Origin: Paraphysomonas bandaiensis
Taxonomy: Eukaryota > Protista > Chrysophyceae
Length of the DNA: 64,000 bases
Direction: 5' to 3'
Assembly (NCBI GenBank): GCA_965644295.1
Contig: CBFFRP010000446.1
Span: 1-64,000, forward strand
Part shown: positions 2,794-58,462 of the stretch, piece by piece
Numbering within the stretch: position 1 is the stretch's first letter
Layout of the letters: each line of letters starts with the position of its first letter
Made by a program: the position numbers and the translations under genes
The notes under the pieces: generated by a model
The model's database searches: none
Told to the model about the DNA's origin: nothing
The model's input: only the letters and a program-made list of their open reading frames with translations

Positions 2794-3069
2794 TATTTGC
2801 TAAGGTTTACTATTCTCAACTGATAAGATGAAATTATAAACATTACATGATAAAGAACCTAAGTTGTGTTCGATGTGTTCAACACCATTCATTTACTACT
2901 ATAGTGTACAACCACACACTCAGTCATCGTATCCTGTATAGTCATCCACTTCTACTTCAGTTTCATACTACATAATATAATGTACTAATTACATATATAT
3001 CTTTCGATCCTTGCATCTCACATAATACTGCACTCAATTGCAAGTATATAGAATCTTCAGATCTCAACA
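2778..3069 (-). repeat. 5' LTR of Copia copy 1
   Basis: 292 bp, reads TGTTGAGATC...CTTCTGTTA on the minus strand, followed directly by PBS TGGTAGCG; few differences from 8574-8866. Confidence 0.95.
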
Positions 3070-3592
3070 AATTGACGCGACTAAGGGTATTACCTCACTA
3101 GTGGTAATTGTACCAGAATTTTTTCCCTCTTCCATGAACACAGGGACACTGTAATGCAAGAATCTGCACAAGATCACTCAGCAGAGGGTATAAAACCCGC
3201 ATTTTTGTAAAAAGAATTCATCCAAAATTGATATTCATGATTTTCAACTTCCGACTTGGATGGAAAATAACTTAAGTAACTGAACCCACTCAATACTAGT
3301 GAAAGTCTTATTATGAATAATAAGCGTTTAAGAGTGTGAACTAAAAGTTAGCATTGCAACTTTACTATCTAGTGCTTAACTCTGGTATCCTATACTATTT
3401 AACTCTACGAAAGCTGCGTGTGCGTGACCGCAAGCACCAAGGTGGAACCACTTTCGCTCTATCACTCAAAGCAAACGCAGTGAGTAAGATTGACATCTGT
3501 TAACATTAGGACTTTTTAGTCCTTAAGGTGACCAGCCCGGATGCTTGACTTCAGCAGGCAGCCACAAATACCCCGGTTAACGTTGAGGTGGG

Positions 3593-3865
3593 TAACAGAA
3601 GTTGACATTATTTGCTAAGGTTTACTATTCTCAACTGATAAGATGAAATTATAAACATTACATGATAAAGAACCTAAGTTGTGTTCGATGTGTTCAACAC
3701 CATTCATTTACTACTATAGTGTACAAACCACCCACTCAGTGATCGTATCCTGTATAGTCATCCACTTCTACTTCAGTTTCATACTACATAATATAATGTT
3801 CGATCCTTGCATCTCACATAATACTGCACTCAATTGCAAGTATATAGAATCTTCAGATCTCAACA
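3593..3865 (-). repeat. 3' LTR of Copia copy 2 (273 bp)
   Basis: Matches 8574-8866 except for a 20-bp deletion (ACTAATTACATATATATCTT). Confidence 0.95.
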
Positions 3866-3874
3866 CTCCCCCTC
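3866..3874 (-). promoter_or_regulatory. Polypurine tract
   Basis: GAGGGGGAG on the minus strand immediately before the TG of the 3' LTR. Confidence 0.9.
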
Positions 3875-3990
3875 AATTGAGTGTTGTACTTATGACGCCT
3901 CCCAGCTATTGAATGCCTGAGATAAAAAAATTCTTGACAGTAAAATAGACTCATCTCTAAGTCTAAACCTCTGTCTAAAAAACTCAGTAC

Positions 3991-6900
3991 CTACTTGCGC
4001 CTTCTTTTATCCCTTGGTCCCTCATTAATCACTTCAGTGGAACTCTTAACTTTCTCTCCAAGATTTCTCTTTCTCTGCTCCATATATGATAAACCAACCA
4101 ATGACTTTGTATAAATATCTGCTGCTTGTTGCGATGTATGCACATGCACTAACTTAATCGTATTGAACTGATTGGGATCCACGTGCTCTCTCACCATGTG
4201 ATACTTAATCTCAATGTGCTTCGACTTCTTGTGAAACACTGGGTTTTCGGCCAAATCCTGGGCACTCTGACTGTCGATGAAGAATGGTGTGGGTTTGATG
4301 AGCCTCAACTTAATCTCACCCGTCACCCCCCGAACCCATAGCACTTCTTGGAGACCCGAGTAAATACACTGATACTCAGACTGCATGCTTGACGTTGCCA
4401 CTGTCGTCTGCAGTTTGGACTGCCAGACTATAGGCCCTCCCGCTGCAAACCCAACGTACCCCGACGTGGACTTCCTGGAGAGCTGATCTCCCGCCCAATC
4501 CGCGTCAGTAAACATATGGAAGTCGAACCGTCTACTCCCATATTGAATCCCTTTGTCAATAGAACCACGAATATATTGCCATACATGTGTTAATAGCTTG
4601 CATACTTCAATATTCACCTTATTACTGAACCGAGACAGTACTCCCACTGCATAGGCTATATCCGGCCTCGTGTTCATCGATAGATATAGTAATGCACCTA
4701 TCAGCGGCCGATATGGGAAGTTATCTACTATAAGCTGTTCCTCCTCGGTATGCTCATGCCGCGCCCCTTTTGCCACTAGATCCATTGCTTCCGCCGGTAG
4801 AGGACTCTTCCGTACCTTTCGCGGTGACCCAAGATACTTTTCAAACTTTTCTAAGATCTTAGCCGCATATACTGATTGGTCAAGACGAATATACTCTGGC
4901 GTTCTTGTGACTCGAACATTCAGAAAATGTTCCATCTCGCCCATATCCTTCATATCAAACCGGGCACACAGTTGAGCTTTAATATCCTTCACTATGTTGA
5001 CATCACGACCTAACACTAGGATATCATCCACATATATCGTTAATAATATCAATTCATCGCCCTTATACTGATAATACAAACACGGGTCTAATACACATGG
5101 TTTAAAATGCATAGATCGTATGAATTTATCCAATGTTTTCCACCACGACCGCGGGGAACTCCGAAGCCCGTATAACGACTTCTTCAGCTTAAAGCAGTAC
5201 CCCTCAGGCAGCTGAAAGTCCGGAGTTGCCTTCATATATACGTCCCCCTCTATATCTGCATATAGAAATGCGTTAGACACATCCAGTTGATGAATTACCA
5301 TGTTCATCACGAAAGCTATGGCGATTAACAGTCGCACTGTTACCCCCTTAACAACGGGTGCGAAATGGTTCGCCCAACCACTCGACTGCTGTCCACAACC
5401 GATTGCTACAAGACGAGCCTTATATCGGCGGACCTCTCCCTCCTTATCGTACTTCTTTCCATAGACGTACTTGGAGTGCAGTGGGACGACTCCGTCCGGT
5501 ATACGAGTCACCTCCATGGTATCTCGCTTCGCCAAACCCTCTCGCTCTACACGGCGAGCTCGTCTCCACTCCCTGTGCTCGGCACTCTCCAAGGACTCAC
5601 GATGTGTCTGAGGCACTGTCGACTCTTCCGCTGACATCCACACTGAGTCTGCCTCCTGTAAAAGGTCACTCACATCACTCTCATCACTCAAATGATGGAT
5701 TTGTCCTAACACCGACACATTCGTTACCGTCCTTGGAGTTCTTGCGCGTTTGCCGTGCGGATGATTCTCGGCAGGGGTCCCTTCCCCCGAAGGTAATGCT
5801 GAGTCAGCCTGGGGCTGCACCTGCCCACTTTCCGACTGCTGTGGCACCACTCCGCTGATACCGCCGTCACGGTTGTCAGTAACTCTGGCCCTAACCACCC
5901 TCTGCGCAAGATCCTCTGTCATCTTCTTGATGTCAGCAATATGAATAGGAGTTTTATCCTCCACTTGAACCTGGTTACCAGTAACCAACGACCGGTATCC
6001 CACAATAAGTCCCTTCCTTATCACCACTCTGTTAGTCTTGTATAGCAGACCACCATCCTCATGGTGCTTTCCGATAAGATACTCAAACTCACCCGGTTGA
6101 CGAACCTCGGGATCTATAGCCACTTGAGCCTCCTCCAGCTCTCTATAATAATCCTGAGACCTCTCAGGTACCGATTCATCAAATAATACATGTACAGAGT
6201 GTACTACGGTGTCCCCCACTAGCACCTTGTATCCTTTTCGATCAGCTGGATACCCTATGAAATAACCTGTCATTGCTTTGTCCTCCCAGTCCTTCCTCCT
6301 GTCGGCCTTGGGTGTTAGCACATATGCTTTGCACCCCCATTTCCGTAGCCACGATAGGCTGGGAACGCTCCCCCCTGGGACACACTCATATGGAGACATC
6401 CATCCTTGCCACGTCCGAGTTGGCATTCGTCGCACAATGTAACATGCAGTTTGATAAGCATCAAACCAGAACGACTTTGGAAGTCCAGATGCCGTCAACA
6501 TCGTCAGTGTCATCTCCCCAATTGTTCGGAATTTCCTCTCAGACACCGCGTTGAGCTCTGGCGTGTCTCGTGTTGTATGTGACACCCGAGTCCCATATCG
6601 CTGCAACAGATACTCTCTTATCTGCTGACTAATAAGTTCGGATCCTCCATCGGCATGATACTCCACTATACGGTTCCACCCCTCGTACTTCACTAAGTGG
6701 ACCTCGCACAAGTGTCGTAGACATTTGAACACCTCCTCTCCGCTTCGAGTCCTCAATCCATATTCCCATATCATCTTTGTTGCTAAGTCCGTAAATAGGA
6801 GTACGTACTTATACCCTTGTCTGGATTCACAATTTAGGTAGACTGAGATGTCCGCTGTCACTCGTTCCAGAAACCTGACTGCGCTTAGCTCTTCGTTGTC

Positions 6901-8589
6901 CCGTGATTTGAACGAATGCCTGGTTATCTTCGCCTTGGCACACCATTTACACAGGGGTTTCTTGCAACTCTTCTCCTTTGCCTTCGAAAGGTGATGTCGT
7001 TGTAGTCCTGATCCTCTGAATAACATGTGTCGGTGAGCTTCTAATAACTTCGATTTCGAGACATGTCCAGTACGCTCATGTAAGCGATCCAACGCATCTT
7101 GTCCTGTATTATCCGACAAATTTACCTCCTCCATCTGATTGCACATAGACACATTTGGCAGATTTAACACCTCCATCAAGTCCACATACGGCATCCCTCC
7201 ATGCTCATCGTACTCTCCAGTCAACACCTCGTTTCCAGAGTCCAATTCCACGATTTTAGGCTTTCGAAGCAGTTGTAATCCGTATCCCATTGATCTCAGC
7301 ATCCCTCCTGACACAATGTTCTTCACCGCTTCTTCACTAACTCTGATGTCTCTCCATTCCCCGAATGTACCAGCCCCCTGTGTCTCCAATTGAGAACCCT
7401 TTCTAGTTAGTTGGATTGCCCCAAACTCAGGAGTAAATGACTCCAGTGCAATTTTATCCTTTACTATAAACAGTCTTTTACTTGCACAACTGTCCAGATA
7501 TACACGAGGTTCTTCCGACGTATCCACCGATAGCAAAACCTCTTCTCCAAACATATTCGCTTCATCATCCGACGACTCTCCGTCGTTGACGTATTTCTTC
7601 CATTCTGTCTCGAATTTCCTGTTCGATTTTCGAGGATTCTCATTATCCGGGTTTTTTATGTTCTTCCGTTTTTTCGACTTGCACTGTCGGGCTTTATGAC
7701 TAAAATCTCCACAGATATGACAACCAGTATAATCCTTTGATCCTGGCTGCTGCACACTCTTCGAAGCCTTTTCCTTTGTCTTCCCTTTTCTTTTGAACTT
7801 ATCCATTTTTCTTTGTCGTTCCTTAGCATAACAATTCGCTGCTACATGTCCCTTCTTCCGACAAAATGAACAAACCACTGGCTCCTTCGACGCCGTAAAA
7901 TTGATCTCTTCAGATTTGTCTCCCTTTAGTTTCTTCAGCTGCGTCATAGCCTCGTCATACTCTTCACAAGCCTCTTTCACCGAATCAAATGTAGTTGTTG
8001 CTTTAGGCATCATCGCTACCGACATCCATAAATCATGTAATTCCTCTATCTGCAGCGCTGCTTTTATCTTTGCTAATTTACTTGCCTCTGTCTGCGGTTG
8101 TCCCAATTTTATGAGCTTCTGGATTATACCGTTCAGTCGATCTACCCCAACAGACACCTTTTCCCCCGGCCTTATTTTGAACGAATGGTATTCTGCCGTA
8201 GTCTTCTCCAATACAGTCCCAATCTCGCCTCTGAACCTATCAACCAGTGTCTGAAGGAGCTCACTGGATAACACCTCCTTAGCAGGATCATCAGCAGGTA
8301 AAATTGCCTTCCCCTCCAAATATTGATTGGCTACCTCCAACACATCAGGGTCATGCTCGCAAGCCTCCCAAATAGTACTAACACAGGTATCATTACGCTC
8401 TCTCCATGACTCTAAATTCCTTCCTCCGGCTGGCGGGTCCTCCAAGCCAAGATGGTTTCGGTTTTTCTTCATTAGATGCATCTTGATTTTTCTCGCTGAA
8501 TAGTCTGCTTGGTTCTTGTCAAACCGTAGCTTCTTGTCATCTTCCCCATCCCTACAACTAGCATTCGCTACCATAACAGAAGTTGACAT
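3991..8589 (-). CDS. Copia Gag-Pol polyprotein (Gag, protease, integrase, RT, RNase H), 1532 aa
   Basis: RYKARLVA, QLDVSNAFL, LKKSLYGLR, IYVDD, FTDADWAGD and KSKHIEIKYH motifs; integrase precedes RT. Confidence 0.98.
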   Translation of the reverse strand: MSTSVMVANASCRDGEDDKKLRFDKNQADYSARKIKMHLMKKNRNHLGLEDPPAGGRNLESWRERNDTCVSTIWEACEHDPDVLEVANQYLEGKAILPADDPAKEVLSSELLQTLVDRFRGEIGTVLEKTTAEYHSFKIRPGEKVSVGVDRLNGIIQKLIKLGQPQTEASKLAKIKAALQIEELHDLWMSVAMMPKATTTFDSVKEACEEYDEAMTQLKKLKGDKSEEINFTASKEPVVCSFCRKKGHVAANCYAKERQRKMDKFKRKGKTKEKASKSVQQPGSKDYTGCHICGDFSHKARQCKSKKRKNIKNPDNENPRKSNRKFETEWKKYVNDGESSDDEANMFGEEVLLSVDTSEEPRVYLDSCASKRLFIVKDKIALESFTPEFGAIQLTRKGSQLETQGAGTFGEWRDIRVSEEAVKNIVSGGMLRSMGYGLQLLRKPKIVELDSGNEVLTGEYDEHGGMPYVDLMEVLNLPNVSMCNQMEEVNLSDNTGQDALDRLHERTGHVSKSKLLEAHRHMLFRGSGLQRHHLSKAKEKSCKKPLCKWCAKAKITRHSFKSRDNEELSAVRFLERVTADISVYLNCESRQGYKYVLLFTDLATKMIWEYGLRTRSGEEVFKCLRHLCEVHLVKYEGWNRIVEYHADGGSELISQQIREYLLQRYGTRVSHTTRDTPELNAVSERKFRTIGEMTLTMLTASGLPKSFWFDAYQTACYIVRRMPTRTWQGWMSPYECVPGGSVPSLSWLRKWGCKAYVLTPKADRRKDWEDKAMTGYFIGYPADRKGYKVLVGDTVVHSVHVLFDESVPERSQDYYRELEEAQVAIDPEVRQPGEFEYLIGKHHEDGGLLYKTNRVVIRKGLIVGYRSLVTGNQVQVEDKTPIHIADIKKMTEDLAQRVVRARVTDNRDGGISGVVPQQSESGQVQPQADSALPSGEGTPAENHPHGKRARTPRTVTNVSVLGQIHHLSDESDVSDLLQEADSVWMSAEESTVPQTHRESLESAEHREWRRARRVEREGLAKRDTMEVTRIPDGVVPLHSKYVYGKKYDKEGEVRRYKARLVAIGCGQQSSGWANHFAPVVKGVTVRLLIAIAFVMNMVIHQLDVSNAFLYADIEGDVYMKATPDFQLPEGYCFKLKKSLYGLRSSPRSWWKTLDKFIRSMHFKPCVLDPCLYYQYKGDELILLTIYVDDILVLGRDVNIVKDIKAQLCARFDMKDMGEMEHFLNVRVTRTPEYIRLDQSVYAAKILEKFEKYLGSPRKVRKSPLPAEAMDLVAKGARHEHTEEEQLIVDNFPYRPLIGALLYLSMNTRPDIAYAVGVLSRFSNKVNIEVCKLLTHVWQYIRGSIDKGIQYGSRRFDFHMFTDADWAGDQLSRKSTSGYVGFAAGGPIVWQSKLQTTVATSSMQSEYQCIYSGLQEVLWVRGVTGEIKLRLIKPTPFFIDSQSAQDLAENPVFHKKSKHIEIKYHMVREHVDPNQFNTIKLVHVHTSQQAADIYTKSLVGLSYMEQRKRNLGEKVKSSTEVINEGPRDKRRRK
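8561..8573 (-). promoter_or_regulatory. Primer-binding site (TGGTAGCGAATGC)
   Basis: Begins with TGG (complement of tRNA CCA) directly after the 5' LTR; the priming tRNA is not determined, though the TGGTA start resembles Met-type PBSs. Confidence 0.8.
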
Positions 8590-8866
8590 TATTTGCTAAG
8601 GTTTACTATTCTCAACTGATAAGATGAAATTATAAACATTACATGATAAAGAACCTAAGTTGTGTTCGATGTGTTCAACACCATTCATTTACTACTATAG
8701 TGTACAAACCACCCACTCAGTGATCGTATCCTGTATAGTCATCCACTTCTACTTCAGTTTCATACTACATAATATAATGTACTAATTACATATATATCTT
8801 TCGATCCTTGCATCTCACATAATACTGCACTCAATTGCAAGTATATAGAATCTTCAGATCTCAACA
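8574..8866 (-). repeat. 5' LTR of Copia copy 2 (293 bp)
   Basis: Direct repeat of 3593-3865, abutting TSD GTGGG. Confidence 0.95.
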
Positions 8867-8912
8867 GTGGGCCTAGTTCCGGGTGCCTGTTTACTCGTCA
8901 GGGCCTAAAGAC

Positions 8913-9379
8913 CTCTCAACTTAGTCGGACTCGCACCTTTTCATAGTGTTCTGGGGATAAGTACCGTAGAGATTTCTCCGGGAAACTAACTTGAGCCGTA
9001 TTTGTAGCCAGCAGATATTGCTCTACCCACTCATAGCCATATGCTTGTGTAGACGCCTTTGGGCCTTGACGAATAAACAGGCATCCGGGAATGAGCCCAC
9101 CTCAAGGGAAACCTGGGTATTTGGCTGCCTGCTGAAGTCAAGCATCCGGGTTGTTCACCTTAAGGACTGATGTCTGAAGATTTCAGGTATATCTATCACA
9201 GCTTTGAGTGATAGAACAAAAGTGGTTGTACCTTGGTGCTTGCGGTGACGCCCAAGCAGCTTTCGCAGAGTTAATTAGTAGGACATTAGTATGAGTATTA
9301 AGTCCTTGATAGATTTCTGTTTAGTTTAACACTTATATATATATTATGCCTATTGTAAAATAATCAGACATTATATTAT
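8913..9379 (+). mobile_element. Structured non-coding retroposon, copy B (inverted, nested in copy A)
   Basis: Reverse-complement homologue of 17352-17839. 13-bp TSD AGGGCCTAAAGAC (8900-8912) / AGGACCTAAAGAC (9380-9392); TA-rich 3' tail. Confidence 0.9.
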
Positions 9380-9599
9380 AGGACCTAAAGACGTCTACGC
9401 AAGTGACACTTCTATTTGTGTCCCTTGTACGACACAAGCTATGAGTCAGCAGAATGTTATCTGCTGTTTATGTTTGCGGCTCACTTTAGTTTCTCGAAGA
9501 AATCTCTCCGATACATATCATCCCCCAGAATACCACGAAAATGTGCGAGTCTGATTATGATGAGGGACTCACTCAAAACTCAATAAATTAAACTATAGT

Positions 9600-13400: not shown

Positions 13401-15217
13401 AAGCAGAACCAGAACTGCTTTCGATGACATAAGCCAGTGTATTCGGAAGGAGCTTAACGATGGCACGACATAAAGATAGAGTAAGCCTCTCCCGCAGACA
13501 ACTCGTTCCCTGTCCTTCCGCCCCACCTCCAGGTGTTTTTGAGACAGGATCAACAAGGAAAGCCGCTGTGATCTGCGGATGGCTGAGTAGACTGTGAAGA
13601 GCCTCGGGATGAGCAATATGTCCTCCGCCCTCCACGTCTATAAGCAGAAGAACAGCAGCCTCAGAGAAAAGCTTTGAACGTGACGTGTCATCCCTTATAT
13701 GAGTACAAATATGAGTCAGCAGCAGCGGTAAGAATTCCGCGATAGTGGTCCTGGGAGAATGACGACAGGCTATCAACGACCAGGGTATCAGGTGCTCGTA
13801 ACTTGCTACAAAATCAAGGGGGCTGGATTCTGTATCTCTATGAAGAGAGTGCTGCGGAGATTGCTCGATGATGCGGTGCACGTTTTCAACAATAGCCGGA
13901 CAAACCTACACAACACTGTCACTGCACAGCACTCATACGTAAAACAGAAGGGGACACACCTTTCCTCTTAAATGCGCCAGAAAGCGACATTGAAGAAGCA
14001 TTAGACACGAGCTAACCGCAATGCCCACCTCTCCCGGCACAGGCGAGGCGAGTGCATACATTAGATGCCGCAAGATCCACTCCTGCGGTCAAAGAAAGCA
14101 GGGACTGTGAAAATGGCAAAGGAAATATAGTAGATACCAGTACCTCGGCTAGATCAATTATTCCAACATTTAGTTGAACAGCTCGAGATGCGGCAGTATC
14201 ATCAATGTCTTCCACAGCACCGAACTGCATGGCAGGGGTGTCATCAAACTTCAGAATACAGGCCTCCGCGGTGCCTTGTCCAGAATCAGGGAGCGCAGAG
14301 AGTAATGCAAAAATGAGGTGAGACATACACGATACTGCCCCGGCATGAAATGGAATCTGGTCGTAGCGGGAAAAGAGCAAAAAAGGGTCAGCAAGCATAG
14401 TAGGCAACACTTGCTGCAAAAGGAGGGAGGCGGAAGCGGAGCAGGCACGCGAGTCGGGTTCGCTCTCATCCGGCGGGGAAGAAAGGGCTTGTCCCATGAG
14501 ACCAGCAGTCCACACATGCAACCCCCCAGCATCTCCAGTATACCGTTCCAGGAGCTCACCAATTACCTGAAAATATGCACCTGTGGTATGGGAATGATCG
14601 GGGAGAAGTTGCCCTGGTTCGAGGCCAGGTGCTTGACCCACCACGCCATCTGCAAATACTTTAAATAGCTCTGATATAAAGTCGCATATTTCATCTCTAT
14701 ATCGCCTGGCCTCTGAGGAGGATTCAAATTGAATGAATCCGTCGACACTATTAGCGCTTTGAACAAACATCCATACATCAATAAGAAGAGGTCCCATCGC
14801 CTCAACCGCAACAGCAGATATGTTTATATTCTCTGACAAACAACACGACTTAATAACTGACATGCCGTCTTTGGACCCTATGAAGCGAACGATCTCCTGT
14901 ATGGGCAGTGCTGCGAGTACAGAGATGGCCGCAGAAAGACACGAGGCTGACTCCGCAGTGCCCATCTCAGTGACAACAGCCGCCCTCACCTCCGACCACC
15001 TCACGACCCTATGAGCGTATATCCCTTCCATGCAATGAAAGGAAACAGTCCGTACATGAGTTGACTTCTCACAGCTGAGTCCTCTTTCAATGAGGGCAGA
15101 CAAGAGGTCGTCAGTGTGGTGGCTGCCATACGACGCGCTCATTATCATACCCAGAGACTCTAACTGCTTGCTAGGGTCCTCACTGCGGAGAAGAGTTACG
15201 GCCAGAGAGTAGTCCAT
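10487..15217 (-). CDS. TPLATE-like (TSET complex beta subunit) / beta-adaptin-COPB-like protein, multi-exon
   Basis: Colinear minus-strand ORFs 14012-15217, 13123-13881, 11427-13373 and 10487-11419. N-terminus LRSEDPSKQLESL resembles TPLATE LRSNDALRQSSAL; QLNGSSD followed by a beta-sandwich resembles the LTGSSDP appendage of TPLATE/beta-COP. Exon limits approximate. Confidence 0.7.
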
Positions 15218-15316
15218 GTTGCCGGCCGAGAGGGTTGATGTGATATATCGACACCACTATACTGAAATATACATACGCCAAACTCCATAACTAACACACA
15301 CACACACGGTAAGATA

Positions 15317-15328
15317 TACATACATACA

Positions 15329-15360
<32 letters not shown>

Positions 15361-15557
15361 CATACATACATACATACATACATACATACATACATACATA
15401 CATACATACATACATACATACATACATACATACATACATACATACATACATACATACATACATACATACATACATACATACATACATACATACATACATA
15501 CATACATACATACATACATACGTACATACATACATACATACATACATACGTACATAC
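15317..15557. repeat. (CATA)n microsatellite between divergent genes
   Basis: About 60 tetranucleotide units seen directly. Confidence 0.99.
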
Positions 15558-15711
15558 CATACTCCTGCTATGTACATGCTGGTCGTGTCCATCTGCATCC
15601 TGGAGGGCTACTCTGTGCGTACGGATGGCTATTCTTGAGGTGAAGTGGAGGTGAAGATGTTCGTATGTGTGTTATGTGTGTGTATTCAGGGATGTTTTGA
15701 GTGGTGTGTGT

Positions 15712-16575: not shown

Positions 16576-17331
16576 AATGATCGAGTGATATGACTGTACT
16601 CTGCACCAAAAGTGGATGAGAAGTTGCGTTTTCTTCCGTTATTGAGGTTTATTAGCCAGGGGGCGATAACAATACATTGCAATATATTGTCAGCAAAATA
16701 TATAATATTGTACCTACTTTTCTCTTAATCACCTATATTATTTTACGTTATTTAAGCGCAGCGAAATATACGAAAGAAATATATTATTCAAGTATTCCAC
16801 ATCATCAAAATGATTGACTTTATTATTCTAATCTTGGTTTTAATTTATCAAGTGGACGAAAAGCGTCTAATATTAAATTCAATTCTGGGTTCAACAACGA
16901 CTGCGTTGACTATATGTTTATAGTATTTACCTTGCCAAACCTAATATTCCACACACACCTAACCATCAATTAACAATTAATGATTCAAATGAGATTTATG
17001 GCTATTCTTAGTGTCTTAGTAATGAAAGATACACTTCGTATTATTACAAGATAAAGGATAAAGATTGATTATTATTGAAGAATAAAACCTAATAGTCTAA
17101 TAGCAAGACACATTTGAACAGAGCGTTAGCACCACATACTTTTGATATTTGAGTATCTGACAGTCGCGTATCTTACATAGTCCGGTAATTATTCAGTTAA
17201 TTGCCATTTCATTATGTATTTGTTGTATTCACGTGTTGAGAGATATACGTGAATTGGTGAATTTTAACGGATAATGAGATACACTTTCGGCTTCGCAATC
17301 ATGAGAACCAATCAAGTGCCACAGCCTACTT

Positions 17332-18027
17332 GTACTCGTATACATAACACATATAATGAAAGTCTTATTATTAGCAATAGGCGTTAAAATCCTGCACCAA
17401 CTTAGTAGCTAGATGAATGCTAGTCAACCTACTAGTAGTTAGACCTCTACCCGTAACTAATCAGTACACACTTTTTTTATCCTACTATACGCTACGGAAG
17501 CTGCTTGTGCGTCGCCGCAAGCACCAAGGTGCGACCACTTCCGCTCTGAGTTCTTAAGGTGAACATCCAGATGCTTGACTTCAGCAGGCAGCCCAATACC
17601 CCGGTTACCCTTGAGGTGGGCCCATTCCGGATGCCTGTTTATTCGTCAGGGCCCAAAGACGTCTACACAAGTGACACTTATTTTAGTGTCCCTTGTACCA
17701 CGCAAGCATTCGGCTATGAGTGGGCAGAACAATATCTGCTGATTATGTTGGCGGCTCACGTTAGTTTCCCAGAGTGAATCTCTCCGGTACTTATCCCCCA
17801 GAACACCACGAAAAGGTGCGAGTCCGACTGTGTTGAAAGATACATAACACACACCGATAGCAGAAAAGACTATTAGAGGAATCGCTATCTCATGAGCAGG
17901 CAGAGACATCGTAAACAATCAAAATATCTGACAGATTAGATACGCTGCTTCTGCCTCATTCCTTCTGATGGCTTATCGACGACAGACATAACATCCACAG
18001 CTATAGAGCATGCTGGTGGTATGTATA
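17332..18027 (-). pseudogene. Duplicated 5' fragment (UTR plus first ~26 codons) of the DUF599 gene, interrupted by retroposon copy C
   Basis: 17332-17351 plus 17852-18027 match 19162-19352. Flanked by a 31-bp direct repeat (17301-17331 / 18028-18058). Confidence 0.9.
17352..17839 (-). mobile_element. Structured non-coding retroposon, copy C (488 bp, best preserved)
   Basis: Perfect 12-bp TSD ATACATAACACA (17340-17351 / 17840-17851); the empty site is visible in the parent gene at 19170-19181. Confidence 0.95.
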
Positions 18028-18381
18028 ATGAGAACCAATCAAGTGCCACAGCCTACTTCGTTATATTTTATATTGGGCTCAATATTCCGCAATAGAATTA
18101 TATCATCCATGTTTCCGTTCTAAACAACATTTTTAGAATTTTGAGGGACTAACAGCTTTCTAGAAAGATGAAAATATAATCTAGTTTTAGGCACCTTTCG
18201 CTAAATGTGCTTCTAAAGAATTATGTGCGTAAAATGCACACGTAAGTTTCAATGGGCTCAACACAAATTCAATTAACGATATCCAATGTATGGATTGCGA
18301 AATATCATACCTAAGACTTCGATCGGATGACATGCATGGAACTAGAGTACATACAATGTTTCACAACTTCTTGATATTCCA

Positions 18382-19239
18382 TCAAACAGACTTCAACAAA
18401 CTCTTGGTGCCATCTGCTTCCCGCTTTTTATCACTTTCATCAACAGCACTACCCAACTCAACATCTGACACCATGCTGCTTGAATTCATGCACTTCTCGA
18501 ACTCATCCATCTCATTCTGCATCCATCTCAGTCGCTCAAAATTCCGCAACATGAACATATAGATTGGGGCTACTGCCAGTAACGCCCAAGGAGAAAATAC
18601 CCAGGCGAAGAGAGGAACACAAAAGTAGTACATTCTTATCCCTTTATATGAAATTCAATGATATATTAAAACAATAAGGAGATAAAAACGCAGCGTACCA
18701 GTAGAATAAAACGCGTGCGCTTTATTAAATACAGCACTGATAACCGACAGAGGTAATGGCTTCCCTTTGATCTCCTTAACGTTTATCATGAAGCTGCACC
18801 AATGTATTAACTTAATACATGGCAGAAAAAGCACTTACTGCAAGTGAACCGCATATCTCGTAGATAAGAAGAATACAAAAAATATTCCCAAAAATAGTAC
18901 AATACACAATGCAAGCTTGACTAAAGTAAGGTTCCGTCGAGAAGAGTGGTCATCAGTGGCTATTTGAGCAGCAAATCCAGCAAAAACAGTTGCAAGCAAA
19001 ATGGAGTTTCCAGCAAAGAAAATCGTCACTCGAAGATAGTCTCTCGTCGTATTACACGCCGCTTGACCAGTGAGATGGTTCTGTCTTACCCACCCTATGC
19101 GCATCTCCTTAAAAAAACCAAGAGCTTTAGTGTCATTGTTGCCTAAGAAGGTGCCTTGTCGGTACTCGTATACATAACACACACCGATAGCAGTAAAGAC
19201 TATTAGAGGGATCACTATCTCATGAGCAGGCAGAGCCAT
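18382..19239 (-). CDS. DUF599 family membrane protein (3 exons)
   Basis: Hydrophobic helices; spliced reading STRYAVH..FMINVK..VFNKAHAFYSTG..IRMYYFCVPLFAWVFSPW is typical of DUF599. Confidence 0.8.
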
Positions 19240-19440
19240 CGTAAACAATCACAATATCTGACAGATTAGATACGCTGCTTCTGCCTCACTCCTTCTGATG
19301 GCTTATCGACGACAGTCAAAACTCAGCTAGAGAGCATGCTGCTGGTATGTATATGCAGCGCCACTGTCGTACTTCGATCTTACGTCAACCGCCATACAAA
19401 AAAAATCCTCCAAAATTTGACTCATGTACACTATATGGAC

Positions 19441-20227
19441 GTATGTGTGTATGTATGTATGTATGTATGTATGTATGTATGTATGTATGTATGTATGTAT
19501 GTATGTATGTATGTATGTATGTATGTATGTATGTATGTATGTATGTATGTATGTATGTATGTATGTATGTATGTATGTATGTATGTATGTATGTATGTAT
19601 GTATGTATGTATGTATGTATGTATGTATGTATGTATGTATGTATGTATGTATGTATGTATGTATGTATGTATGTATGTATGTATGTATGTATGTATGTAT
19701 GTATGTATGTATGTATGTATGTATGTATGTATGTATGTATGTATGTATGTATGTATGTATGTATGTATGTATGTATGTATGTATGTATGTATGTATGTAT
19801 GTATGTATGTATGTATGTATGTATGTATGTATGTATGTATGTATGTATGTATGTATGTATGTATGTATGTATGTATGTATGTATGTATGTATGTATGTAT
19901 GTATGTATGTATGTATGTATGTATGTATGTATGTATGTATGTATGTATGTATGTATGTATGTATGTATGTATGTATGTATGTATGTATGTATGTATGTAT
20001 GTATGTATGTATGTATGTATGTATGTATGTATGTATGTATGTATGTATGTATGTATGTATGTATGTATGTATGTATGTATGTATGTATGTATGTATGTAT
20101 GTATGTATGTATGTATGTATGTATGTATGTATGTATGTATGTATGTATGTATGTATGTATGTATGTATGTATGTATGTATGTATGTATGTATGTATGTAT
20201 GTATGTATGTATGTATGTATGTATGTA
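19441..20227. repeat. (TATG)n microsatellite between divergent genes
   Basis: About 195 units seen directly. Confidence 0.99.
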
Positions 20228-20274
20228 TCTTGGTGGTATAGATATGGTTATGGTGTCATATAAGTGTGTATGAG

Positions 20275-22032
20275 ATGGACTCGGACGATGTTTTGTGGGA
20301 TGATGTGTATATGGGAAGCAAGAGAGTATTCTTGCGGGCAGTTTCAGGGAGGAGTTATTGTTTTCGTTCCTGTGACTGGTCTCTGTGTGCGTCATCTGTG
20401 TCTGCGTCGGGCGGGATGTGTGAGGAGTATCCTGTTATGGTTCCGGGTGTTCCAGCTCTTGATTTTAAGGCTGATGAAGATGATATGTTAAGAGAGATGA
20501 GTGGTCCTCTGTCAGTTCCTCTCTTAAAGACACCTCACGACCCTCTCTGCTGTTGTGTGCCGTACTATGCTGTTGCTAGTGGTGTGCGCAGTGCACTGGT
20601 AAAGATTGACTCCACATGGTATCGTTTGAAAGGTTGTGGCAATAATGATGAAGGATTTCCAGTGAGGACACATCGTCGGCCCTCGACTGCTTCCGACACT
20701 GAGTCCTGGAGAGAAATTCGAGGCTGTACATTTGAGAATACCGCATACCGTGAATTGAATATGACTAGTAGTCTTTCTGCCACATTGGCTCCCTTGGGTA
20801 TCGTATCCGCGAATAAACCTACCGGCTGTTTCTTTTACGACCACCCCAATCAGCCCCTTGGGCCAAACTTTCCACCTGTTTGTGTTGTCGAGGCCACTAT
20901 TGGAGACAGGCGCTTCGGTTCCCATGTATTGGCGGGTATAGAGTTGATTCTCCCTCTTTTGCTTGAGGTGGACAAACTACAAGATACGGAGGTGCGTGCT
21001 CTGTTTCCCCCTATGCGCCCAGGTGTACGAGAATCAGTAGAAGGGTCAGGTTTTTGTAATTTCCCCTCCACTGGGGCCTTTATTACCGACTTCGCTCTTG
21101 GCACGTTGTTAATGGGACACGCAGAAGGAGCAAAAGGTATCCACTGGCCAGACCTTCCACGTGATTCTTCTACACTTGCCGATCTAACGCGGTGCCCCAC
21201 TGAGACTTTGCCTGAGAGAGCGCCACCAGTATCAGAACCTGCACCTCAGCAGTGGACGAACAGTGGTCACGTGGACATGTCTCCAAAGTGGATACCTGAA
21301 TGGAACAAGACCTGCAAGCTATTGAGTAAGCATTTGGAGACAATAAATAAGTCTTCAGGTCTGACGAAAGATGGTACTAACTCTGTGTTGGTCTATCTCT
21401 TTTCGCGATGTGGCTATGATGCTGGAAGAATTCTTGGAGGCATGCACAAACAGAATATTTCGTGGGGAACATTCCAAGACTCAATGTGTAGAAAGGTTAG
21501 TTACGTTTTTGTAATCTTCCTCGAGTGATAGTATGTATAGGATTTGGACGAGTGGCACTGTAATGCGCACGCGAATAATTTGGTTGTGATACCTGAAGGC
21601 CATATTCGATCGCCCCACCCAGGATATCAAGCACTCTTAAGCTTTCTTGACTTAGATATGGCTTTTAGCACGGATACTTTTTTAAACAGTAGTGGAGAAG
21701 AAGTAACAATAGGAATGAGCGAAGAGCAGTCGAAGCACTTAAGATGGCGGGAGTTTGTAAATATGATGGAGGTACTGGCAGGGAATGATAGCTCAACGGG
21801 TGTGCCGCAGGTTGCAAGGCCTACTGTGGAAGCTCAGAGTGATATTATTAAAGTAGTTAAAGCTGCTCTCTATGACACATTAGTACTGTCTTACACACGA
21901 GGGTACCAAGAGTGTTTGGACCAGTCTATTGCATGCCCCACTGGTGTGCCGTTTTATGATGAAACCATGCACAGTGCCGCTCATTGCATAATACGTCTAG
22001 CTATCATTGTAATGGCAAATTTTGTAGCTTAA
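20275..22032 (+). CDS. Uncharacterised protein with SelO/protein-kinase-like motifs (2 exons, intron ~21496-21540)
   Basis: YRLKGCG...RG...AYRE and GMH...NAHANNLVV...FLDLD motifs; in-frame GT-AG intron. Confidence 0.7.
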
Positions 22033-28036: not shown

Positions 28037-28298
28037 GGGGGTGGAGGGTATAGGAGATAGATTACAATGCCATCGAGAGTCGTGGTTATATAAGAGAGTG
28101 ACAGAACCCTGCTATACATACATACACATACATAGTGAACACACAGCGATATCTACTGCAGAGCATATATATACACAGTAGAGTACATACACGCATGAGG
28201 TACCTCACACCTCATATGTAGTGTATATGTGAAAATATGGATAAAGTATGAAAATTAGGGATATTTATTTACCTGTATTGGGATTTCCAGTGTGTACT

Positions 28299-29214
28299 TA
28301 TGTATGTATGTATGTATGTATGTATGTATGTATGTATGTATGTATGTATGTATGTATGTATGTATGTATGTATGTATGTATGTATGTATGTATGTATGTA
28401 TGTATGTATGTATGTATGTATGTATGTATGTATGTATGTATGTATGTATGTATGTATGTATGTATGTATGTATGTATGTATGTATGTATGTATGTATGTA
28501 TGTATGTATGTATGTATGTATGTATGTATGTATGTATGTATGTATGTATGTATGTATGTATGTATGTATGTATGTATGTATGTATGTATGTATGTATGTA
28601 TGTATGTATGTATGTATGTATGTATGTATGTATGTATGTATGTATGTATGTATGTATGTATGTATGTATGTATGTATGTATGTATGTATGTATGTATGTA
28701 TGTATGTATGTATGTATGTATGTATGTATGTATGTATGTATGTATGTATGTATGTATGTATGTATGTATGTATGTATGTATGTATGTATGTATGTATGTA
28801 TGTATGTATGTATGTATGTATGTATGTATGTATGTATGTATGTATGTATGTATGTATGTATGTATGTATGTATGTATGTATGTATGTATGTATGTATGTA
28901 TGTATGTATGTATGTATGTATGTATGTATGTATGTATGTATGTATGTATGTATGTATGTATGTATGTATGTATGTATGTATGTATGTATGTATGTATGTA
29001 TGTATGTATGTATGTATGTATGTATGTATGTATGTATGTATGTATGTATGTATGTATGTATGTATGTATGTATGTATGTATGTATGTATGTATGTATGTA
29101 TGTATGTATGTATGTATGTATGTATGTATGTATGTATGTATGTATGTATGTATGTATGTATGTATGTATGTATGTATGTATGTATGTATGTATGTATGTA
29201 TGTATGTATGTATG

Positions 29215-29246
<32 letters not shown>

Positions 29247-30106
29247 TGTGTATGTATGTATGTATGTATGTATGTATGTATGTATGTATGTATGTATGTA
29301 TGTATGTATGTATGTATGTATGTATGTATGTATGTATGTATGTATGTATGTATGTATGTATGTATGTATGTATGTATGTATGTATGTATGTATGTATGTA
29401 TGTATGTATGTATGTATGTATGTATGTATGTATGTATGTATGTATGTATGTATGTATGTATGTATGTATGTATGTATGTATGTATGTATGTATGTATGTA
29501 TGTATGTATGTATGTATGTATGTATGTATGTATGTATGTATGTATGTATGTATGTATGTATGTATGTATGTATGTATGTATGTATGTATGTATGTATGTA
29601 TGTATGTATGTATGTATGTATGTATGTATGTATGTATGTATGTATGTATGTATGTATGTATGTATGTATGTATGTATGTATGTATGTATGTATGTATGTA
29701 TGTATGTATGTATGTATGTATGTATGTATGTATGTATGTATGTATGTATGTATGTATGTATGTATGTATGTATGTATGTATGTATGTATGTATGTATGTA
29801 TGTATGTATGTATGTATGTATGTATGTATGTATGTATGTATGTATGTATGTATGTATGTATGTATGTATGTATGTATGTATGTATGTATGTATGTATGTA
29901 TGTATGTATGTATGTATGTATGTATGTATGTATGTATGTATGTATGTATGTATGTATGTATGTATGTATGTATGTATGTATGTATGTATGTATGTATGTA
30001 TGTATGTATGTATGTATGTATGTATGTATGTATGTATGTATGTATGTATGTATGTATGTATGTATGTATGTATGTATGTATGTATGTATGTATGTATGTA
30101 TGTATG

Positions 30107-30140
<34 letters not shown>

Positions 30141-30141
30141 T
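28299..30141. repeat. (TATG)n microsatellite, ~1.84 kb, between divergent genes
   Basis: About 460 units with only a few interruptions (29217, 29249, 30109). Confidence 0.99.
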
Positions 30142-30233
30142 GCATGTGTATGAGGCTCTTCATCCTCTCTGTACATGCATATTATGCTCCATGGCGAGCA
30201 GTCTCCTTCCATCCATTCAATGCACTAACCTGA

Positions 30234-31956
30234 ATGCTCTCATTCCTTCTGATGCTGTCTATGTTCTCTCGTATGTCAGTGACCGTATCTTATCGCAGCA
30301 GATCTGTGCGCTTGTGTCCCTCTTACGTGACTCACAGACACACACACAGACACACGCCTCCTCCTCTATCTCACCACACACAGGTGCCTCATGTCCTTCC
30401 CTCTCACCCCCCTGTAGATGTCACTATAGCAGAGACTGTTGAGGATATAGACAGGTGGGTATCTGCGCACATGGCCTCCGGGTGTCATGTCGGGTTTGAT
30501 ATCGAGTGGCGCCCGTCTTTCAGGAAGAATATAATAAATAAAGTTGCATTAGTTCAGTTGTCTACTGATTCATCCGTTCTGCTGGTGCAAACGAGACGGT
30601 TTGGACACTTTCCTACTGCTTTAAAGCATGCTTTAGGACGGGAAGGTGTGGTCAAAGTCGGTGTTGGGATCTTAGATGATCTTATGAAGTTAAATAGCGA
30701 CTGCGGTGTCCCTATAGGAGAATTTTTAGATGTCGGCGCTGTCGTAAAGCGAATTGATAATTTAGATAAGACTGGCTTGAAGCATATCATGAAGCACTAT
30801 TTCAAGTATGACCTATTGACCGAGATGTCGTGTAATAATTTCTTTGCAGTGTGGATACAACTAAGCCCAAGCGTGTACAAATGAGTAACTGGGAAATGGC
30901 CATTCTAACATCAGCTCAGATAAAGTATGCATCTCAGGATGCACTAATGGGCCGGTAAGAGTATGTGTGTCCTCCTTTCTCTGTATTTCTGGTGCACACA
31001 ATTTTGTAGCGCTGCGACTTTGATGCAGCTGTTGTGCGTTATGTAAATGGCAAGAGTTCTCACTAATATGGTTTGTGGGTACAATATATATTACCTATAT
31101 TCATACATCACTGGCATCACTGACTGCTAACTGCTAATTTTGCTGACGGTGTCACATAGATTGATGTATACACTTATTCAAGATAAGGTATGGTTCGACC
31201 ACAAGACATCACTATCTGTTCTTATACTTTTCAGAAAATGTTGAACGACGCGTATACAGATGCTGCTATACAGATTATAAGGGATGCACTACTGCCGGTA
31301 ATCGTAGTGTATGTATATCATCTCTTTTGTTACCTACTATGCAGGGGTCCAGGGCAGCTTATAGACAAGCATTTCATATAGCATCGGAATCAAGTACTCT
31401 GATGTCCTATGTACTTGATTATATGAAAAATGAAGAAACGGTTTCTAGTTTGTTATTGAGTCATGACAATCAACCACGTATGGTGAGTAGTATATTTTAC
31501 GACTCTAATCAAAACTAAATGTTCTTTGTCCACATTTTGCGCTATTGTTGAACAATGTTATGACTATATCTTCGTCACAATACAGACTCTCATCTACTCG
31601 CTGTTGTGTGTACATGTAGGCTCTGAGATCGTTTTGCAGTCGCCTTGATTTAGATGTGAGCTGCTTGACCGTCTGCCATTCTCCTTTTTGCGTGAGTGTC
31701 CTCGTTTTTGTAATTCTACATATTGCACATACATGATAAGTGAAACGTAGCACTCATTACATACTGCAAGATTAGATGGTTGATTATGTAATTTGTGCCC
31801 TTTACTCATCTTTTACAGGCTGTGGTGAAGCTCAACGAAACAGTAGTGTGCAAAGTAAATGCAGACACGAACCTGTCGAAATTGGAAAAAAATAAATGTA
31901 TCAACGATATGATAATTGAACTGTTACATCGCTTAATTCATGGTCAAAGGTACTAG
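30234..31956 (+). CDS. WRN/EXD2-type 3'-5' exonuclease (DEDDy), multi-exon; 3' exons approximate
   Basis: VGFDIEW, VALVQLST, KVGVGILDD and SNWE..LTSAQIKYASQDA motifs. Confidence 0.88.
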
Positions 31957-40770: not shown

Positions 40771-41077
40771 CACTGGTGCAATTGTGCACACTACGCAATA
40801 AAACACATTCGCCATAATCTGCGTGTTCTAAACGTTTTTAAAATGTTTTAGTTTACCTGTATCTGACATATTTAATCCTTTGCATAGTCGTTTACATTAG
40901 TTTTGAAATTTTACTAGATTTTGACGGTTTTAACAGGTTTGTTGATCACTTCGACTTTCTGCTATATATTATTTACGATCTATAATATATATGATATATG
41001 ACATGACCAGCCCTCTATTCATACTGTGCTGCTGTGTCAAGTGGATAGCATTTAAATTCTCTGAGTCTCCCTCATAT

Positions 41078-51062: not shown

Positions 51063-51350
51063 CATTTGATTACAAATATACTTCTTAACTTATTCAAATT
51101 TATATTTTTTAAATTTATATTTAAGGTACGATACTAGGTTTTTAATCTATATATTTCAATATGACACATCTTTGAAAAGTGATTGCTTTTATTGTTTTAG
51201 TGAACACTGCAGGGCTAGGGAATAGGGAACTATATATGGAATTGATATATATTGTAAAATATAGTGATTGGTGGAGAGGCCTAATATTTACTATTCTACC
51301 ATACTGGTTGTAAACGTAACTCACAATATATTGATAGTCATCAATATAGA

Positions 51351-51530
51351 TATATATATGAAAGTATTATTATTAGCAATAGGCGCCGAGAATCAGCAAC
51401 AGATAGGTAGCTAGATGACTAGATAAAAACTAGTCAAGCTAGAGATGGACTTATACCTGTAACTAACTAGTACAAAAGCTATATAACACTACGAAAGCAG
51501 ATTGTACGTCGCCGCAAGCACCAAGGTGCA
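51351..51530 (-). mobile_element. Structured retroposon, copy D (5'-truncated, 3' ~180 bp only)
   Basis: Matches 17352-17531 (GAAAGT..TATTAGCAATAGGCG..GTCGCCGCAAGCACCAAGGTGC) with a (TA)n tail; no clear TSD. Confidence 0.8.
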
Positions 51531-51641
51531 CACTATGACTATCATGAATCTTCAACACATACTATCATCAATTCAGTTTGTGATATGTTTCATTGATTTA
51601 AGATGACACTCAATTCTAAGAGCGCTTCATACAAAAAAATA

Positions 51642-56917: not shown

Positions 56918-58462
56918 AGGGCTGCGTATAAATTAATCGTCAATTATAATTGCAATTTTTACTTGCTGTCTCAATTTCAATTATTGCAATTACTTAATAC
57001 TAAAATATTGTTATCAATCCCTGCTATATCTAGCAATTAGCAGTCAATATATAATATATACCTTAGACCTAGCAGGGCTGCTTCACAATTAATTATCAAT
57101 TAATTGACGCATGTTGTAGTGAATTATAATTACAATTATTACTTGTCGTCCCAATTAATTGAAACTACACTACGTACTCAAATAGCTATATATTAGCTGC
57201 AAATATAGCTACCTCAACGTTCTAAATGCGTAAATTGTTATTATAATCTTAGCTCTACTGAACATTGTTGATTATGGTATGCAAGTGCTTCAGCGATGCT
57301 TGCTTCCGCTGCTTGCTACCACTAATCAAACGTCGTCATACTGAATAAGAATCTCATTGTCATCACCTTCTTCTTCCTCATTGAGAAAAGATGTTTTAAT
57401 ATTATCCTTTTCCGTCCGAGATAGTGCGGCTTCATTCCATTGGATATATACTATATATAATATCTGATTATTTAACAATAGGCATATAAGTGTTAAAACT
57501 AAACAGAAATTTATCTATCGCCAAGGTGCGACCACCTCCTCTCTCTGTCCTTAACGTGCGCTAGCCCGGATGCTTGACTTCAAGTAGGCAGCTCAAACCC
57601 CAGATACCTTGAGGTGAACCCTGTCCCGGATGCCTTTTTATTCGTCAAGGCTCAACGACGTCTACTACACAAGTGACACTTATTAGTGTCCCTTGTACCA
57701 CACAAGCATTCGGCTATGAGTGGGCAGAACAATATCTGCTGACTATATATGCCGCTCACGGTAGTTTCCTGGAGAAATATCTCCGGTACTTATTCCCAGA
57801 ACAAAGGTGCGAGTCCGACTTTGTTGGCATTCCATTGGAAGCATTACTTTGATTTTTCTTTTGTACTCTAAGTCCAAGGCTTCCATAGATACCTCATCAA
57901 AGTTGATCTCAAAATATGACTCAACCTTTTGTTCTTTCGTGTCAATTGTTTAACACAAAAAGGAAAAGGAAGATCACTCACTATCACTCAGTGATACGCA
58001 TTCCACGCTTGAGGTGATATTTTGCGCTCAACATATTTCCCATCGCACCACCACTCGCTGGGCAGCCAAACTTTATCTTTCCATCCATCGTGTTTGATTG
58101 CATGCTGCGACAGGTTGCGCGACCCATAGTGTTAAATTACGCACCTCTTCGTTATTAGCATTTATTTTCTTAAAGAACACTCCTGCAATGACGTCTGGTA
58201 CCAGAATTCCGCTCATATCACTAATTCATTACATGAATTATTATGTGAGATAGTCTTATGGATATTACATCAATCTTCCATATTGATCGTAAGCATTGGA
58301 TTTTCGTGTAATAAAAAATGCCGTTTTTTAAATTTTCACTGTCAAAATATGACATGCAAAATTTTTTATCATTAATTGGAACAAGCTAGAGTCAATTATA
58401 ATTGCAAATACGATTTGATATCCCAATTTCAATACTTGACAATTAATTTCTTCGCAGCCCTC
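56918..58462. mobile_element. MITE/hAT-like non-autonomous DNA element(s) with CAGGGCTGC termini
   Basis: CAGGGCTGC at 56918 and 57073, GCAGCCCT near 58455, and subterminal CAATTATAATTG palindromes; a similar end at 41946-42039. No TSD found. Confidence 0.45.
57445..57827 (-). mobile_element. Structured retroposon, copy E (383 bp, internal deletions)
   Basis: Perfect 12-bp TSD CATTCCATTGGA (57433-57444 / 57828-57839); (TA)n tail; homologous to copy C. Confidence 0.93.

Follow-up and report, generated by a model that had tools for sequence, protein, structure and literature searches.

An insertion with an empty counterpart in the same window

The window analyzed here is a stretch of 64,000 nucleotides from the genome of Paraphysomonas bandaiensis (contig CBFFRP010000446.1). 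It hosts five copies of a dispersed repeat, which we call copies A to E, and a Copia-type LTR retrotransposon (Table 1). Copy C is a full-length element that lies on the reverse strand. When read on its sense strand, it begins with CTTTCAACACAGTCGGACTCGCACC at the 5' start and closes with ...GACTTTCATTATA at the 3' end, and the same 12 bp are found directly adjacent to both of its ends, as expected of a target site duplication (TSD). The sequence that flanks copy C has a paralogue approximately 1.3 kb downstream, where the flanks match positions 19162-19181 and 19170-19269 with 95-100% identity and without interruption, and where the duplicated 12 bp occur only once. This empty site indicates that copy C, with its 488 bp, was inserted into the locus and that 12 bp of the target were duplicated in the process. 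The junction between positions 17839 and 17840 is also bridged by one contig from a run of the same organism, and the insertion of copy C is therefore present in that run as well.

We placed all copies in the window by BLAST of a consensus built from 30 copies (see below). A first-pass annotation of the window, made from the letters alone, had listed the same five copies, and all of them were recovered with boundaries that coincide with the original ones or deviate by a few bases only. It had also reported TSDs of 12-14 bp in four copies. These are exact in C and in E (12 bp each), while copy B has a TSD of 13 bp with one mismatch and copy A one of 12 bp with two mismatches. Copy A is interrupted by copy B and by the Copia element, and its three pieces are now dispersed over more than 6 kb. 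Copy D, which the same annotation had described as 5'-truncated, indeed retains only a part of the tail (consensus 308-485). With 80% identity to the tail of the SINE and 78% to that of the LINE described below, it would be a 5'-truncated copy of either the SINE or the LINE, the two alternatives being indistinguishable. In a genome search, the diverged heads of copies A and E retrieved members of the main family alone (82-91% identity). Copies A and E are decayed, and we rejected their assignment to separate subfamilies. The Copia element falls outside the retroposon family and displays a contrasting type of TSD in the same window (5 bp, GTGGG).

Table 1. Coordinates of the elements found in the window and of the structures proposed for copy C. 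Positions refer to the window, except for the helices of the candidate fold, which are numbered from the first base of the element.
Feature	Position	Strand	Evidence or remark
Copy C, full-length element, 488 bp	17352..17839	-	94.9% identity to the 30-copy consensus, positions 4-485
Copy C head	17548-17839	-	
Copy C LINE-derived tail	17352-17547	-	
Tail with two conserved hairpins and terminal AATAAT.AGAC.TTCA motif	17352..17540	-	90% to the C440 LINE 3' UTR
Copy C TSD, left (ATACATAACACA)	17340..17351	.	direct sequence reading
Copy C TSD, right (ATACATAACACA)	17840..17851	.	direct sequence reading
Empty site, local paralogue of the copy C flanks (ATACATAACACA once)	19170..19181	.	flank matches
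Candidate HDV-like (Pr77-type) fold, first 88 nt	17752..17839	-	manual threading
P1 of candidate fold	1-7 with 38-45		C39 bulged
P2 of candidate fold	14-21 with 82-88		A17 bulged
P3 of candidate fold	22-25 with 33-36		closes 7-nt L3
P4 of candidate fold	53-60 with 64-71		
J4/2 of candidate fold (AAACUAACG)			includes C-U-A-A
Copy A, 5' piece	9380..9566	-	consensus 1-190
Copy A, middle piece	8867..8916	-	consensus 174-223, between Copia LTR and copy B
Copy A, 3' piece	3296..3592	-	consensus 219 to end, with extra ~70-nt linker
Copy A TSD, 12 bp	9567-9578 and 3284-3295		2 mismatches
Copy B	8913..9379	+	inside copy A
Copy B TSD, 13 bp	8900-8912 and 9380-9392		1 mismatch
Copy D, tail region only	about 51350..51535	-	consensus 308-358 and 404-485
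Copy E	57445..57827	-	head positions 5-316 and shortened tail
Copy E TSD, 12 bp (TCCAATGGAATG)	57828-57839 and 57433-57444		
Copia-type LTR retrotransposon	3593..8866	-	nested in copy A; repeat families, Pfam RVT_2/rve, junctions
Copia LTRs	3593-3865 and 8574-8866		

The family accounts for about 1% of the genome

We searched the 62.6 Mb of the genome, distributed over 669 contigs, for further members of the family. Copy C as a query returned dozens of full-length copies with 90-93% identity, and the 30 full-length copies that we assembled into a consensus of 485 nt share on average 96.5% identity with it. These 30 copies begin within 1-2 bases of CCCTCAACAAAGTCGGACTCGCACC. Full-length copies end in ...AAGACTTTCAATAT, followed by a short run of A or AT. 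A 27-nt motif of the head, with up to three mismatches allowed, occurs 1,328 times genome-wide, and a 30-nt motif of the main-type tail 564 times; the reversed pattern gave no occurrence in either case. If each of the 1,328 heads stands for approximately 500 bp, about 1% of this 62.6-Mb genome of a marine protist consists of the family.

The insertion hallmarks seen in the window are also detectable at this scale. Among the 37 copies for which both ends could be compared, 24 are bordered by TSDs of 10-16 bp (mode 13-14) with at most one mismatch, as opposed to 0.5% of 7,177 mismatched flank pairs used as a control. The TSDs often start with TA or TAT and overlap the TA end of the element, which fits priming by microhomology. 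Outside the TSDs, the flanks differ between copies and consist of unrelated sequence. We also sampled 20 loci that carry the main tail and that, among the matches listed, have no exact head. A complete or nearly complete head is present in 11 of them, and approximately eight are truncated at the 5' end, with starts that range from consensus position 168 to 440. One locus (L109) bears positions 8-131 in inverted orientation, joined to positions 168-485 with the loss of 36 nt at the joint. Inversion accompanied by a deletion at the joint is a trace of twin priming in L1, and by analogy the rearrangement of this locus would be of the twin-priming type. Two metagenome scans, one with the head motif and the other with the tail hairpin motif, gave no matches, and a search of the literature, as distinct from Repbase and Dfam, returned no paper on such a family in diatom-like algae.

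The element is non-coding and lacks recognizable Pol III features

The consensus contains a stop-free stretch of 127 codons, which has no ATG and is interrupted in 24 of the 30 copies. Substitutions are evenly distributed over the three codon positions of this stretch (128, 133 and 153, respectively). The element is non-coding, in agreement with the first-pass annotation, which had seen no conserved ORF. The same annotation had noted the lack of terminal inverted repeats and of a clear tRNA A or B box, and both observations were corroborated: the best inverted identity between the two ends is 12 out of 30 positions, and no match to either box was found in the element even under loose patterns. 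ARAGORN detected no tRNA in the window, and no Rfam model matched the whole window at the gathering score. When the threshold was relaxed to E <= 10, copy C remained without a match and 12 further copies gave only a chance match to a lncRNA (E = 5). The Rfam search that had been recommended as a check thus leaves 13 copies of the family with no relevant match. The sense strand bears a run of four Ts (T4) at position 26 and a run of five (T5) at position 447. Folding of the whole element returned an ordinary stability (z-scores of -0.33 on the sense and -1.6 on the antisense strand).

The tail resembles the 3' UTR of resident LINEs

We scanned the genome for reverse transcriptases (RTs) and compared the DNA downstream of two LINE-type RT matches. 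Positions 293-485 of the SINE match contig C440 with 85-86% identity (BLAST), and the match starts 47 nt past the stop codon of an ORF of 3,021 amino acids with SET (1092-1196), Exo_endo_phos (1262-1499) and RVT_1 (1956-2207) domains (Pfam). In a MAFFT alignment, the tail of copy C and this LINE's 3' UTR share 90% identity over 180 nt, as compared to 66-77% identity between copy C and the tails of other SINE subfamilies and 62-89% between the tails of these subfamilies. The C440 LINE is a young element that spans 9.4 kb. Its 5' end, (A)AATTCTCTGCCCTACG, is sharply defined and common to at least 40 copies with approximately 100% identity; around 90 copies of this type have an intact 5' end. Three copies are readable at both junctions and have TSDs of 12, 13 and 14 bp, which is in the same range as the TSDs of the SINE.

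A second LINE lineage, represented by contig C644, has an open frame of 3,731 amino acids and a shorter 3' UTR, which retains both hairpins of the tail and the terminal AATAATCAGA motif. The two hairpins, GCAC-CUUG-GUGC and UGCG-GNRA-CGCA, are both kept across 11 tails (RNAalifold), with one compensatory change from G-C to A-U in the C644 LINE. The main SINE tail is 90%, and not 100%, identical to that of the sampled LINE, which leaves this LINE a candidate driver of the subfamilies.

The head occurs in several forms and is missing from three LINE lineages

Nothing in the C440 LINE (lineage c, at least 40 copies) matches the head (positions 1-292). The head is also absent upstream of the ORF in the C644 LINE (lineage b) and in C143 (lineage d), both of which have at least 900 nt without the head before their ORFs. 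In lineage a (C426), an antisense SINE adjoins the start of the ORF. The first-pass annotation had suggested looking for an autonomous LINE that shares both ends with the element: such sharing was found at the 3' end, where the C440 LINE is 90% identical, and not at the 5' end, where the head is missing from three lineages.

To describe the forms that bear the head, we sampled 20 loci through an exact 27-mer of it. Besides the element of 485 bp, the head is found in a form of approximately 515 bp with a duplication of positions 203-239, in a form with an extra linker of 70-100 nt such as that of copies A and B in the window, in forms with other and shorter LINE-type tails, and in internally deleted minis. 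At four of the 20 loci, it opens an element of 1,213 bp, in which head positions 1-324 precede a non-coding, unrelated stretch of approximately 870 nt and a tail that is very short. This tail retains only the GNRA hairpin and its final ~30 nt, and ends in ...TTAATAATCAGATTTTCAATAT. The 1,213-bp element has no ORF longer than 55 amino acids and contains five T4 runs, and a TSD of 13 bp borders the copy that is readable at both junctions. We counted approximately 98 copies of it, at least 39 of which are 99-100% identical, and this identity marks the element as the youngest member of the family. A six-frame comparison of the sampled LINE DNA with both the SINE and its 1.2-kb relative recovered only the tail.

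The 1,213-bp element makes do with a minimal tail, which suggests that mobilization requires neither the first hairpin nor the middle of the tail. The head itself is a portable module, shared by the 1.2-kb element and by subfamilies with other LINE-type tails. Judging from the 99-100% identity between the copies of the 1.2-kb relative, and likewise between those of the partner LINE, the family is still active, or was so until very recently.

A candidate HDV-like fold at the 5' end

The first 88 nt of the element could be threaded manually into a candidate HDV-like fold of the Pr77 type (Table 1). The helices follow the HDV order P1, P2, P3 and P4, and the predicted cleavage site coincides exactly with the first base of the element. 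P1 requires a bulged C, and P1.1 consists at best of one weak pair. Pr77 ribozymes start with C1, which pairs with a downstream G (PMC4035085), and the P1.1 of this type measures only 1-2 bp (PMC3185411). Genome-wide, A45 is found in eight of the 16 heads that start with U1 and in eight of the 100 heads that start with C1 (P-value = 1.5e-4, Fisher test). This association fits a base pair between positions 1 and 45, and could equally mark descent within a subfamily.

Over 63 distinct heads, the threaded fold is 94% paired. The same heads show four double changes against 1.9 expected, a count equaled in 56 out of 500 shuffles; with copies so similar to each other, and with most of their changes postdating insertion, this comparison carries no information. 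A covariance model of the head, with the best 150 genome candidates scored, recovered near-identical copies only and no divergent relatives, and the HDV-type models of Rfam gave no score at E <= 10 on 13 copies. Some of the internally deleted copies retain only positions 1-56, 1-75 or 1-82 and hence have no 3' strand of P2; these copies may simply be dead. On balance, we give slightly less than an even chance to the possibility that the first ~88 nt are an HDV-like ribozyme.

A broader proposal, which we regard as tentative and as rather more doubtful than probable, is that the head is a free-standing, portable module of the HDV-like (Pr77) type, present in no resident LINE and repeatedly joined to different LINE 3' handles to give the parasites of 485 bp, ~515 bp and 1.2 kb. 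If true, SINEs headed by a ribozyme would exist outside trypanosomatids, with unrelated sources for the definition of the 5' end and for the recruitment of the RT. What the 1.2-kb member retains of the tail, namely the GNRA hairpin and its final ~30 nt, would then represent a minimal RT handle.

Probable mobilization by a LINE and alternative origins

The copies very probably form a family of non-autonomous, non-coding, non-LTR retroposons, which are SINE-like, have a head that does not come from a Pol III gene, and depend on a LINE. The RNA of the element, of approximately 485 nt, would combine a family-specific head of ~290 nt with a tail of ~190 nt that reproduces the structured 3' UTR found in resident APE-type LINEs. 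It may be produced by Pol II or by read-through transcription and then be trimmed to its exact first base by the 5' ribozyme, a route that we hold to be nearly, although not quite, an even bet. The RT of the closest LINE would recognize the tail, with the two short hairpins and the terminal AATAAT.AGA..TTCA, ending in a short TA/AT run, as the putative handle. The LINE enzyme would then nick the target and copy the RNA by target-primed reverse transcription, leaving TSDs of 10-16 bp. We infer from the sequence comparisons that the C440-type LINE mobilizes the family in trans: the homology of the tail and the TSDs of 12-14 bp in the LINE support mobilization in trans by target-primed reverse transcription. 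The first-pass annotation had already proposed a non-tRNA, non-autonomous RNA that is moved in this way by a LINE, and its proposal is reinforced by the 86-90% identity of the tail with an APE/RT LINE, by the equal range of TSD lengths and by the truncated copies.

Transcription of the family by Pol III seems unlikely because of the lack of a recognizable promoter, the T runs, and the existence of a 1.2-kb relative with five T4 runs. Pieces of the element were found in contigs of a polyA marine metatranscriptome, with a summed depth that exceeds that of the contig matching the paralogue of the neighbouring gene; given more than 1,300 genomic copies, they show neither autonomous transcription nor the ends of the RNA. 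These pieces may derive from host transcripts or from DNA.

Three other origins can be weighed against a LINE-dependent retroposon with a head of its own. The family might be an internally deleted derivative, of the SIDE or NARTc type, of an unsampled autonomous LINE whose 5' UTR is the ~290-nt head found here. This origin would explain why the linker that follows the head in copies A and B and at one further locus (L069) is found in the 1.2-kb element too, which makes the short form look like a deletion product of longer RNAs that bear the head. It could also be accommodated in lineage a, whose 5' region is obscured by the antisense SINE next to the ORF start, or in further lineages among the 150 RT matches listed, whose 5' ends lie outside the comparison. 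However, the LINE with the closest tail has a sharp 5' end and no head, lineages b and d have no head in the long stretches that precede their ORFs, and none of 20 random head-bearing loci continues into an ORF, the longest form being the non-coding element of 1.2 kb. We therefore consider such a derivation unlikely. Less probable still, and in our view very unlikely, is a canonical Pol III SINE with a head derived from a tRNA, 5S, 7SL or snRNA gene that diverged past recognition. A SINE design would be in keeping with the length of ~485 bp, with the copy number and with a tail derived from a LINE, and an internal promoter would give the precise 5' end that we observe. Against this origin stand the negative searches for tRNAs (ARAGORN, window), for Rfam families (E <= 10, 13 copies) and for A or B boxes (loose patterns). 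In addition, the T4 at position 26 and the T5 at position 447 would tend to halt Pol III, and the same head is carried by the 1.2-kb element with its five T4 runs.

The chance that the copies are solo LTRs, MITEs or other DNA transposons, or a dispersed segmental duplication is in our opinion vanishingly small. Repetition alone speaks for it. A solo LTR or a DNA transposon with fixed short TSDs was the outcome that the first-pass annotation had named as contrary to its reading, and we found TSDs that vary between 10 and 16 bp, as opposed to the fixed 5 bp of the Copia element in the same window, and no terminal inverted repeats. At their 3' ends the copies share homology with a LINE 3' UTR, truncation is restricted to the 5' end, and the flanks are unrelated between copies. 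We rejected the solo LTR because of the 10-16 bp TSDs and because the ends of the element, CCCTCAAC...TTCAATAT, are not TG..CA, and the MITE or other DNA transposon because terminal inverted identity is limited to 12 of 30 positions and TSD length is not fixed.

Comparison with known retroposons

A LINE-dependent retroposon with a portable head has counterparts among known systems, and differs from each of them. The stringent SINE-LINE pairs (PMC5786205, PMC3747384), for example UnaSINE1/UnaL2 of eel, the Pol III SINE/CR1 of tortoise and Bov-tA/Bov-B of ruminants, are likewise short, non-coding and high-copy. They also have a 3' region that copies the 3' UTR of the LINE with a stem-loop and a short terminal repeat, variable TSDs, and a head and a tail that are separate modules. 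Unlike in these pairs, the head of our family is not recognizably derived from tRNA, 5S, 7SL or snRNA and contains T runs, and unlike in usual Pol III units it is also found on an element of 1.2 kb, which is too long for such a unit. The design of a SINE with a LINE tail is already known: in classical stringent SINEs, a head and an optional body precede a structured tail of LINE origin. It is the head not derived from tRNA that is unusual.

The NARTc, RIME and SIDER elements of trypanosomatids, which carry Pr77 (PMC3185411, PMC4035085, PMC3383444), are similarly non-autonomous, mobilized by APE-type LINEs and devoid of a tRNA head. The resemblance may extend to Pr77 itself, as the first ~80 nt of the family can be arranged into an HDV-like ribozyme with C1 at its start and a predicted cut at the first base. 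In trypanosomes, however, Pr77 also heads the LINE (L1Tc/ingi) and the tail is poly(A), whereas our family has a structured tail of the LINE 3' UTR type, its head is absent from the three LINE lineages judged, and the HDV-type models of Rfam do not score on it. The analogy with SIDEs, NARTc and SIDERs that the first-pass annotation had drawn is apt for the mode of working and probably not for an origin by simple internal deletion, given that the head is absent in three LINE lineages.

The SIDEs of R2 are also non-coding and LINE-dependent, and they too keep the 3' UTR of the LINE. The 5' end of R2 is defined by an HDV-like ribozyme. The SIDEs themselves derive from R2 by plain deletion, have both ends in common with it and occupy one specific insertion site in the rDNA. 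The family described here, in contrast, inserts genome-wide and its head was not found in LINEs. Another parallel is offered by the SVA elements of hominids, which are modular, non-autonomous composites mobilized by a LINE in trans and not Pol III units. SVAs are built from pieces of Alu, VNTR and HERV-K, and rely on poly(A) and on the relaxed recognition of L1. They have no sequence relationship to our family.

With tails of several lengths, one of which is minimal, the family provides a natural system for how the RT of a LINE selects its template. It is also relevant to the question of how a retroposon that has no Pol III promoter gives its RNA an exact 5' start. In annotation, the family accounts for many short 'orphan' repeats and nested insertions, and TSDs of 12-14 bp are a signature by which insertions driven by LINEs can be told from those of Copia in the same DNA, which have TSDs of 5 bp.

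Local duplication and rearranged copies of the SINE

A local segmental duplication with 95-100% identity relates the flanks of the full-length SINE copy C (17298-17351 and 17840-17992 of the window) to 18025-18058 and 19162-19322 and supplies the empty site of this copy. One contig from a public run connects 18300 back to 17840, a reflection of the paralogy.

Elsewhere in the genome, L104 and L109, SINE copies that are either truncated or inverted, have telomere-like repeats of two units, (CCCTAA)2 and (TTAGGG)2, immediately at their 5' junctions. In L109, the inverted consensus positions 8-131 are fused to positions 168-485, with 36 nt absent. This combination of inversion and loss is twin-priming-like. 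On contig C17 (71725-74413), a variant head (GGATTTGCACC...CATGG) occurs three times in identical form on one strand, at a spacing of 1,322 bp, which suggests that an element with this head is arrayed in tandem there.

Insertion sites and 5' UTR of the C440-type LINE

Several copies of the C440-type LINE, a SET-APE-RT element, sit within, or directly adjoin, the 3' tail of another SINE or LINE. The cause may be that AT-rich tail ends are preferred as targets, or simply that the nesting is dense. The 5' UTR of the element on contig C440 (locus L063, 6718-6792, minus strand) is about 70 nt long and contains an upstream ORF of 12 codons, which is in the same frame as the 3,021-aa ORF and ends in a stop.

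Copia-type elements and tandem repeats in the window

Two copies of a Copia-type LTR retrotransposon are present in the window. The complete one, whose ORF encodes rve, SH3_retrovirus and RVT_2 domains, is inserted in the interior of SINE copy A.

The window also hosts long arrays of (ACAT)n and related purine-pyrimidine microsatellites, some forming inverted pairs (46065-46426 and 49400-49761 are 96% complementary). A tandem repeat with a period of 54 bp (35522-36937) lies within a 1,831-aa ORF (32897-38392, minus strand) that has no match in Pfam, and a distinct array with a period of 26 bp occupies 40106-40777.

Coordinates of repeats and retroelement copies
Feature	Location	Remarks
Copia-type LTR retrotransposon, complete	window 3593-8866	1,532-aa ORF; 5-bp TSD GTGGG
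Copia-type LTR retrotransposon, second copy	window 1-3069	identical to 5796-8866
(ACAT)n/purine-pyrimidine microsatellite arrays	window about 15212-15637, 19274-20400, 28250-30440, 45950-46430, 49370-49820	
SINE copy L104	G000:C19:65658-66347	telomere-like units at 5' junction
SINE copy L109	G000:C46:76852-77541	telomere-like units at 5' junction
C440-type LINE copies	L093, L096, L100, L087	5' or 3' junctions at SINE/LINE tails
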